This document shows positions 12,501 to 15,500 of a stretch of DNA of 64,000 bases, in pieces. The stretch comes from Macrostomum lignano (taxonomy: Eukaryota). Within the stretch, counting starts at the first letter, position 1. Each line of letters starts with the position of its first letter. Under the pieces are notes generated by a model. It ran no database searches, was not told where the DNA came from, and worked only from the letters and a program-made list of their open reading frames with translations. The position numbers were made by a program, and so were the translations under genes. The stretch covers positions 1 to 64,000 of the forward strand of contig NIVC01001457.1 in assembly GCA_002269645.1 (NCBI GenBank), read 5' to 3'.

Positions 12501-15500
12501 GATTAAATCTATGGGTAAGTTCCACTTCTAGGAAGTGGGTATCGATGAGGACAGCTAATTGTGGTGTGTGTTTATCGCAGGTAGTAAGACTGCCGTGCTC
12601 ATGCGTTCGTGTGTGGATATGCGCAATTGGGGAGTAAAAATACGAGATAAATTGATTGAAAAATTGATTGAAAAAGTTTTTGGCTGCTTTTGAAAATGGT
12701 TTTTCATGATTAGGTGTAGAAAATCAGTAGAATAAACTCAGGACCGCAACGTACTTGTACAGCCAAATAGCACACTGCAGTCAGGCTGTATTTCTTGCTT
12801 TAAAATAATAGTTAGCTCGTATTTTGCTGTGAACTTTCGGCGTCACGAAAATAATTTTACGGCAAAAAATTAAAAAACGGGTAGAGAGCAGTGGGTGCAC
12901 ATAAGGTCAGAAAATTTTGCGAAGTAGAATTCCGATTCAGGGGTGGCTTTCATCGCATTTAAACTGAAGAGCTTGAGATGGGATAGTTACCAATTTAACT
13001 GGGCTTACCACGAACTGAAATAAGGCGAGAGTTGCAACTATCAGGTTGTTAATATAGTCAGTTGAGAGTTACAACAGGTGAATAAATACTTGAGGCTGGC
13101 TCCTAAACAATTGAAATAGCCATTATGCACGCTTTTCCGTTGTGTAAGTATCAGAACACAATTTTAAGTCATAATGCACAAGGATTGACTTAAAGATTCG
13201 TCCAAAACTTGAGTAAGCAAGTTGATGATTTTCTAATAAAGGAAACTAGAAGTAAATATTTCGGGGGAGTTAAAAGCAACAAACTACTGTAAGAGTATTC
13301 GGCACCTGTCAGAGAAGGCTAATGTTTGTTTATATAGATTCGTGTACATATAGGCACAGAAACAGAAATTCAACTAATACAACAGTTGATCCTATCACTG
13401 AAATATAAAATTAAACTAATTTTAGAGTTTTAATGAATCCGTCTCTCTCTTACCTTCTGTCTTTATCTTCAAATTTGTCCGTACTAAAGCGAACAACGTG
13501 GCATTGAACATGACGGTGCCGTCAGAGTTGAGTGGCATGTTCATGGAGACCAGACGCTGAAACGTTTAGGAATGTAATGCAAATTATTACAGCAATGTCA
13601 TGATAGGAAAACAATTTGAGGATGGCTGCTTTAGGACGGTTTGTGGACAGTTTGGAGAAACTCTGCCATAATCAAGCCTGCTTAGGCTTACTTGCTGGAG
13701 CAGCATCACCTAAGTAGGCCACTAAATTCTGTACCAATTGAATCAGCCAAGGCATTATAGTGTACCTTGCATATTTTACGATGCGGACAAAGCTTTCCGA
13801 ATCCCAACGGTGGATCGATTTTTCTTAGCAGAGTCACCACGTCGAGATGCTTGATTCGACCTCTGTAAAATGTAGCATGGATCAATGCGACATTTCTTAT
13901 TGCGTAATTTCACTGCGGGAAATCTGAGTGTAAAAATGAGAAAATGGCATTCATAGTTAGAGCTCACTTGGCGCTAGGGTCGTATTCAGACCAAAGGCGG
14001 ACAAACTCGTCCAGATGATGCGGCCCAAGAATTGACCAGTCCCGGGTCAGATAGTCGAAGTTGTCCATAATTACAGCAACGAATAAGTTGATAATCTGGA
14101 GACGAGTATTATGGACGGGTTGTTTTTAGTGCTGTAAATTATTTATTTACATGCAATTACACGTTAGTCACGAATAGGCATGCAATATTTTTCGCAGCTG
14201 AATGCCTTTTATGTAGAAAAGGTACTTTCACCTCTCGAATGGGCTTTTGAAGTATAAATTGGTAACAATAAAAACAGCAAGTTTGAGAGTAAAACTTCTG
14301 ATTCCATCACCAACCTTGAGACCTGGAGCATTGCAAAGCAAGAGCAAAGCAAGAGCAAAAACTCTGCATTTCATCATCACCAATTACGAGGCAGTTGGTA
14401 ATTAGAATTGCGCACCAATCACCGATCAATCTGGATTTCTTACCAAAAATGAGCACAAAGTTATAAAAGTAACAAAAAAGGGGTAGGCAATGTAGCTGTG
14501 GCAGCTCGGCTCGGGCAAGCCACTTAGATTTCGTGTCGCCTCCCATTCCAGGTAGCTGTCGCTGCGATAATCGCACTTGGCATCGACTGAGTCCATTTGT
14601 TTTTTAAAGAGGAGGGGGTGAGGGGTATCGTGACAATAGCTGCTGGTAATTTGAAACTCACCAGAAATGAGCACACCATGTAGAAGCTGATAAAGTACGG
14701 ATACGCTATCGGACTGCCGCAGCTGGTCTCCTGGCCAAGGGCTGACTTGTTTAGCAGAAGCACCTCGCCAGGTGAAAAGGTGCGGTTTAGAGACATCACG
14801 TGGTGCCTAATCTGTTGGGTGAACTCTTCTTTGTAGGCCTGGTAGCTGTCACTGGCTTTATCGCACAGCACTGATGGGTCTAAAAAACCCCAGCAATGTA
14901 GAGAATTGGTGGCGCTAGTTTTACTGAACTTTATTTTGGTTGCAGCACTTCGATCGTAGGTCTTTTTCAAAACATAGCCAAAAATTTAATACTAAAAATG
15001 TCACAAAAAAGTAAAAACTGTATAGGTTAGAAATATTTGACAAATTTCAAATAGAACTTCCTTAAGAAGATGGTTCGCACCACCGTCAAATGAATCATCA
15101 GATTGAACGATGTATGTGAAAAGCTGTCCTGCTTTGTGTGCTAGTCATGTGATTGATCTTATTTGATAGCGGTGTATAAAATGAGAACTATGCAAATAAA
15201 CTTGCTTTCATGCTTATCACTAGCTTCATCAGAAATGAGTACTAAATCAAATAATTATTTATTCACTATTCATTAGTCATTATTATTCAATCCCTTCCTA
15301 CCGCTAACGCAGTCGAGCAGAATTTCCTGCCAAGCTTCCCCAGTGGCCGATCTGAACAGCACCAACGAAGCGGCAAAGAACGTTCGAAAATTGTTATTCC
15401 GATTGATCTGGGTATGCGCGTTCAGACGGATTTTGCCGAACATTTGCATGCCGATGACAGCGTAGATGAAGAATAGCATCAAAATTAGCAGGGCCACGTA

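Follow-up and report, generated by a model that had tools for sequence, protein, structure and literature searches.

A candidate mutually exclusive exon pair for the D4L6 loop and upper IVS6 helix in a Cav1 calcium channel gene of a macrostomid flatworm

In four-domain channels, gating, inactivation and the access of ligands are governed by the S6 helices and the loops that overlie them. The alternative exons known to us in voltage-gated calcium channel (Cav) genes concern IS6, IIIS2, IVS3 and the C-terminus, and to our knowledge IVS6 is not among them. Here we describe a tandem pair of paralogous exons, 23a and 23b, in the Cav1-type gene of a macrostomid flatworm; they encode the extracellular loop between the P-loop and S6 of domain IV (D4L6) together with the upper part of the IVS6 helix. 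The gene lies on contig NIVC01001457.1, of which positions 1 to 64,000 of the forward strand were analysed (64,000 nucleotides (nt), hereafter the window). We put at roughly 0.65 the probability that the two exons form a conserved, mutually exclusive D4L6/IVS6 pair in Cav1.

A close precedent is provided by exons 8 and 8a of Cav1.2 (CACNA1C), which resemble the pair in the window in being tandem paralogous exons of an L-type gene that are used one at a time and encode an S6 pore helix. The choice between these two IS6 exons has been reported to change sensitivity to dihydropyridines (DHPs), and among the drug-site segments of Cav1.2 IS6 alone is alternatively spliced, the others, including IVS6, being encoded by constitutive exons (PMC3596553). 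By comparison, 23a and 23b lie in domain IV rather than domain I, would exchange the whole D4L6 loop as well, and have a two-fold length difference. A second precedent is exons 15a and 15b of NALCN in invertebrates, including flatworms, which are likewise tandem mutually exclusive exons of a four-domain channel and run from pore-loop elements to proximal S6; they are conserved across species and have been lost in some lineages (PMC3557258). The NALCN exons belong to domain II and alter a selectivity-filter residue (E/K), whereas the filter Glu of the flatworm gene is encoded by a constant upstream exon, and ion selectivity would therefore not be directly swapped by 23a and 23b. Finally, exons 12a and 12b of invertebrate Cav3 channels encode, like 23a and 23b, cysteine-containing extracellular pore loops of differing length, and these alternative loops alter ion passage and block (PMC7382465). 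The spliced Cav3 loop is D2L5; D4L6, the loop type that 23a and 23b encode, also has alternatives in Cav3, but these arose by gene duplication in cnidarians and not by splicing (PMC7382465).

The pair was first proposed in a reading of the window's letters (the original prediction), which held that the known mutually exclusive exons of Cav genes leave out IVS6. This agrees with the review that assigns IVS6 of Cav1.2 to constitutive exons (PMC3596553), and no description of an alternative IVS6 exon, of flatworm Cav1 splicing or of Macrostomum calcium channels was found in the searchable literature, which is not proof of absence.

The window gene is transcribed from the minus strand, from about 37,860 down to below 8,000, and codes for a four-domain voltage-gated calcium channel alpha-1 subunit. 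Exons 23a and 23b are placed between its domain IV P-loop exon and the exon for the C-terminal half of IVS6 (Table 1). Both have lengths of 2 mod 3, contain no stop in the frame that is needed and are flanked by AG and GT. Inclusion of both leads to a stop 21 codons into 23b, and skipping of both shifts the frame and again brings in a premature stop. The position, length, phase, splice sites and stop-free frame of each exon, as originally predicted, proved exact on re-checking, and the claim that the reading frame admits a single exon per mRNA was borne out. The motif C-D-x-x-S-D-S-Y and the 10-mer GACAGCTACC occur in both exons; their sharing had been taken as a sign of duplication, and paralogy was indeed recovered at the DNA level by repeat finding, with one match of 29 nt at 79% and another of 17 nt at 88%, the latter crossing the donor. 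To judge from the sequence, 23a and 23b are thus a genuine tandem duplicate, usable one at a time.

In 23a, 47 residues separate the loop cysteines, the loop carries the sequons NRT and NKS, and IVS6 has the canonical Tyr-Met pair (FYM); its acceptor (GGGGTTTTTTAG) and donor (CTG/GTGAGT) are both strong. In 23b, 23 residues separate the cysteines, the loop has the single sequon NLS, and Ile-Thr (FIT) replaces Tyr-Met; its acceptor ends in GGACTCAG and its donor is TTG/GTAAGA. The intron position that interrupts the helix at CSFL/IINLF is common to Taenia, Rotaria and those environmental contigs on which the downstream exon is present.

Table 1. Coordinates of the alternative exon pairs, their neighbours and the exons compared with them (positions in the window unless a contig is named).
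Feature	Coordinates	Strand	Description	Basis
Upstream exon, constitutive	15302..15509	-	End of IVS5 and domain IV P-loop with selectivity-filter Glu; ends in phase 1	Translation; spliced alignment to M. lignano homologues
Intron, P-loop exon to 23a	14880..15301	-	422 nt; GT 15301-15300, AG 14881-14880; GC 0.325	
Exon 23a	14662..14879	-	218 nt; phase 1 to 0; long P-loop-to-S6 loop and N-terminal part of IVS6	
Intron between 23a and 23b	14587..14661	-	75 nt; shortest intron in the modelled part of the gene	
Exon 23b	14444..14586	-	143 nt; phase 1 to 0; short loop and divergent N-terminal part of IVS6	
Intron, 23b to IVS6 C-terminal exon	14096..14443	-	348 nt; GT 14443-14442, AG 14097-14096	
Downstream exon, constitutive	13968..14095	-	C-terminal half of IVS6 and proximal C-terminus	Translation; spliced alignment
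IIIS2 exon, first	21839..21733	-	107 nt; AG/GT	
IIIS2 exon, second	20951..20845	-	107 nt; AG/GT	
IIIS5 exon	19373-19680	-		
IIIS6 exon	19034-19235	-		
IVS6 exons of contig L003	813-949 and 1008-1126		137 and 119 nt; same phase; 58-nt GT..AG intron	Inclusion of both gives a premature stop

The pair is also present in gene models of Macrostomum lignano. In P0179 (A0A1I8IQR8) and P0299 (A0A1I8GUC8), an a-type segment (EPTVLCDKQSEIYQ...) is followed directly by a b-type segment, an arrangement that is, by its sequence, a gene-prediction artefact revealing both exons in tandem. The model P0300 (A0A1I8FGX9) contains an a-type S6, about 20 codons of intron and then a b-type exon, and in P0039 (A0A1I8H277) nothing separates the upstream exon from a b-type exon, the junction being at the homologous acceptor. 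The upstream exon of the window gene is about 90% identical to those of P0179 and P0039. Across the window gene and M. lignano, the a-type is recognised by the signature xVLCDK... and by 41-47 residues between the loop cysteines, and the b-type by AKCD..SD.Y.(E/D)W, by EPxC, by a sequon in a constant position and by a spacing of 21-23 residues from cysteine to cysteine; the b-type exons of the four models and 23b share 17 invariant columns. The conserved differences between the types are the length of the loop and, in S6, Met in the a-type against a beta-branched residue in the b-type. Because type-specific signatures are found on both sides, the duplication is older than the split between the lineages of the window gene and the M. 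lignano models, and both copies were kept coding.

The explanation that we favour is that an ancestral exon, encoding D4L6 and the outer two-thirds of IVS6, would have been duplicated in tandem, and that the copies would have been retained as mutually exclusive exons, with either 23a or 23b in each mRNA. Transcripts with both or neither would be frameshifted, meet an early stop and be removed by nonsense-mediated decay (NMD). The two channel isoforms would share their voltage sensors, selectivity filter and inner gate and would differ in three respects: the D4L6 turret, long in a and about half that length in b; the entry to S6, CGSP in a and CHSY in b; and the residues that line the III-IV fenestration where Cav1.1 has Tyr1365-Met1366.

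The assignment of the gene to the L-type family is consistent across several features. All four P-loops of the EEEE selectivity filter are encoded by exons in the window (TMEGW in domain I, TGEDW in II, TFEGW in III and TGEAW in IV), as are a Cav1-type proximal C-terminus and an IQ motif. The best matches among solved structures are Cav1.1, Cav1.2 and Cav1.3 (E about 1e-65), ahead of Cav2 (1e-53 to 1e-59), and this includes the b isoform; the top database matches carry L-type names. The gene is accordingly placed by sequence as a Cav1 alpha-1 subunit of a macrostomid flatworm. The closest database proteins are M. lignano L-type channel models, with about 84-90% identity in core exons, which suggests that the window gene belongs to a lineage related to those models; a divergent, unannotated paralogue is a less likely alternative.

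That 23b is a chance open reading frame (ORF) can be set aside, because an AG, 143 nt open in phase and a GT coincide at only 1 of 9,659 intron positions in the window gene. A span of 47 codons is by itself open 6% of the time in these introns. The composition of 23b (GC 0.49; GC at third codon positions, GC3, 0.60) lies above the values of 0.33-0.44 in the flanking introns. We regard 23b as probably a working alternative exon.

Several observations nevertheless weigh against our explanation, some concerning 23b itself and others the means by which exclusivity would be achieved. The S6 part of 23b matches the M. lignano b-types at only 9-10 of 20 positions, compared with 18/20 among the b-types of the M. 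lignano paralogues and 18/20 between a-types, and this divergence implies that the constraint acting on the S6 part of 23b has weakened or changed in the window lineage. The acceptor of 23b is weaker than that of 23a, its pyrimidine tract being set back by about 20 nt, so as to lie about 20-40 nt before the AG of the a-b intron, and an A-rich stretch preceding the AG. No near-identical counterpart of either spliced isoform peptide is present in the protein collection. The evidence for 23b consists of genomic sequence and protein gene models, and that for the pair in M. lignano of gene models rather than cDNAs.

Some of these observations could also be explained if 23b had recently been disabled, that is, if the pair worked in the macrostomid ancestor and continues to do so in M. 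lignano, while the window lineage uses only 23a and 23b is drifting. The low S6 match, the weak acceptor and the lack of a near-identical 23b-spliced peptide all fit such a history, as does the T-richness of the changes (CCCTTTTTTGTTACTTTTATAACTTTG), since T-rich codons are hydrophobic by default. Yet the frame has stayed open, and AG and GT occupy homologous positions; 23b retains each of its three cysteines as well as the Trp, the loop sequon and the pattern YP..F..F...CSFL; GC and GC3 are exon-like; and all of the S6 substitutions are conservative, each being present in working Cav channels. When neutral drift was simulated to the observed identity of 45-52%, the ORF and both splice sites survived in 3-5% of cases, and in at most 1e-4 when indels were allowed. 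A fully neutral history is thereby rejected, and only a recent loss of function fits. We consider a disabled 23b unlikely, if worth keeping in mind.

A further possibility is that 23b serves mainly as a 'poison' exon, whose inclusion with 23a would bring in the premature stop in 23b and NMD and so tune channel abundance, without giving rise to a second protein. The position of that stop and a weak acceptor of the kind typical of regulated exons are compatible with this role. Such an exon needs no conserved coding potential, however, whereas the b-type keeps its cysteines, sequon and S6 pattern across species in a frame that is read only when 23a is skipped; a purely regulatory role for 23b is therefore highly improbable.

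The remaining points against mutually exclusive use of 23a and 23b concern mechanism. The very short intron between them may contribute steric exclusion; its length is 75 nt in the window, 58 nt in the second pair described below (contig L003) and, provided that the acceptor sits at the homologous position, would be about 52 nt in M. lignano P0300. The window gene also has constitutive introns of 81-93 nt, barely longer than that between 23a and 23b. Because these introns are spliced, steric exclusion is not established, and to assert it from intron length alone would be unjustified. A search for docking and selector RNA pairing of the Dscam type returned only short imperfect inverted repeats of chance size, and no motif common to the a-b introns of the window and L003 was found (437 of 500 shuffles scored equal or higher).

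The frame-exclusive mode of splicing is one that the window gene uses elsewhere, as indicated by a second pair of exons, at IIIS2, that is also conserved in M. lignano. The two IIIS2 exons are 55% identical, and inclusion of both or neither results in a stop. In M. lignano, P0220 (A0A1I8GVU8) fuses both types and P0179 takes the first. This pair lies at the same site as exons 21 and 22 of Cav1.2 (PMC3596553), and affects a voltage-sensor helix, not the pore.

The original prediction had gone further in proposing that the exon choice toggles the drug-binding site, 23a giving a DHP- and phenylalkylamine-sensitive channel and 23b a resistant, Cav2-like one. The residue mapping on which this was based is upheld. 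The Ile-Thr of 23b aligns to Tyr1365-Met1366 of rabbit Cav1.1, and the combination 'IT' is unique among 216 retrieved Cav proteins, in which the one other context for an Ile in place of this Tyr is the Cav2-type 'IF'. IVS6 belongs to the DHP, phenylalkylamine and benzothiazepine sites, and exons 8/8a supply a precedent for a change in DHP sensitivity through an S6 exon (PMC3596553). The replacement of Tyr did not, however, turn out to be a conserved difference between the two exon types: the M. lignano b-type exons, with FYV and FYI, both retain Tyr, as do the two exons of L003, so that the Tyr-to-Ile change is found in the window gene only and is specific to its lineage.

The other half of the proposal, that the 23a isoform has L-type pharmacology, is made unlikely by the constant exons. 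In IVS6, 23a carries the Tyr-Met pair that 23b lacks, and the constant downstream exon supplies the IIN of the lower part. In domain III, IIIS5 reads VTFLLEFMF in place of the vertebrate VTTLLQFMF (Thr→Phe and Gln→Glu, the latter common to the window gene and M. lignano P0220), and IIIS6 has Phe and Val in place of the vertebrate Tyr1179 and Met1188. The changes Gln1070Glu (rat Cav1.2 numbering), Tyr1179Phe and Met1188Ile are associated with loss of DHP affinity, the residue in the window gene at the last of these positions being Val where the cited change is to Ile (PMC6796685). Schistosomes, which are refractory to DHPs, have a Cav1 substituted at the same positions (PMC6796685). As the key determinants are missing from the constant IIIS5 and IIIS6 exons, isoform a probably has no high-affinity DHP site to lose. 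Moreover, the drugs are synthetic and cannot be the selective agent. A toggle of L-type pharmacology by 23a and 23b is thus doubtful, and we consider its full form, with one sensitive and one resistant channel, very unlikely.

A b-type profile was searched against 1.84 billion representative proteins, among which the b-type signature was confined to M. lignano. The same search brought up P0301, from the Logan contig L003 (run DRR639055), which has a tandem IVS6 pair of its own (Table 1), with Tyr in both exons (FYM, FYI). Because the two L003 exons cannot be assigned cleanly to the a- and b-types, this pair may represent an independent duplication. A single exon is present at the junction in about 20 other genomic Cav loci, including those of Taenia crassiceps, a Rotaria species and five Logan or environmental contigs (L004-L008, two of which are the same sequence). 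The turrets of L004-L008 combine features of a and b, as is expected of an unduplicated ancestor. In a metagenome survey of 80 loci, none of the 14 that were genomic at the junction had a second copy, nor was the a/b pair seen in the single tapeworm Cav1 locus that was inspected. A weak match to a second IVS6 exon in Taenia crassiceps (YFVSFYCFC) runs into a stop and lacks the turret cysteines, and was rejected. A putative third, decayed copy in the intron upstream of 23a (15226-15257) was likewise discarded, being not significant by direct search (E about 2).

Taken with its conservation, the sequence of the IVS6/D4L6 pair indicates that it is probably a real alternative pore exon pair. Its use would likely alter the outer vestibule, gating and inactivation, and the access of ligands through the fenestration, rather than switch a DHP site. 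By analogy, this is the more defensible functional reading, being in line with the work on the D2L5 and D4L6 loops of Cav3 (PMC7382465) and on NALCN exons 15a/15b (PMC3557258). We propose only tentatively, and at somewhat less than even odds, that the D4L6/upper-IVS6 pair conserved in macrostomids would constitute the first alternative splicing of IVS6 in any Cav channel, with 23b having added a Cav2-like face to the helix, and would yield two pore variants that differ in gating and in III-IV fenestration access for lipids, toxins or drugs.

Other parts of the window can be described briefly. The intron at 15722-17879 (minus strand) separates IVS3 (...DIITGKL) from IVS4 and is 2.2 kb long; at this position M. 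lignano P0179 has 13 additional residues (VSQDPTQHGTGRH). By analogy with vertebrate exon 33, the intron may hold a candidate optional micro-exon for the IVS3-S4 linker. Intron 1 (37393..34282) consists largely of tandem arrays, one with a 22-nt unit in about 71 copies (35808-37353) and one with units of 19/54/73 nt (34430-35181); both arrays (34430-37353) produce long spurious open frames. Upstream of the gene, positions 38000-64000 are nearly all micro- or minisatellite, with units of 4, 11, 14, 15, 16, 17, 19, 21 and 23 nt in up to about 177 copies (for example, a 17-nt unit × 134 at 39872-42202). No convincing protein-coding gene was found between 38000 and 64000, every ORF of at least 130 amino acids there being repeat-derived or of low complexity.

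The analysis has consequences for public annotation and for flatworm pharmacology. Models P0179, P0299, P0300 and P0220 are, judged by their sequences, mis-built, the predictor having put the two alternatives of a mutually exclusive pair in series; an impossible double IVS6 is the result in at least three M. lignano models, and a double IIIS2 in P0220. Since the classical DHP site is already eroded in the part of the channel that both isoforms share, the choice of isoform is unlikely to explain drug insensitivity. If our explanation is true, an either/or exon for IVS6 and D4L6 would provide a natural experiment on the contribution of this pore region, in isoforms that are otherwise identical.

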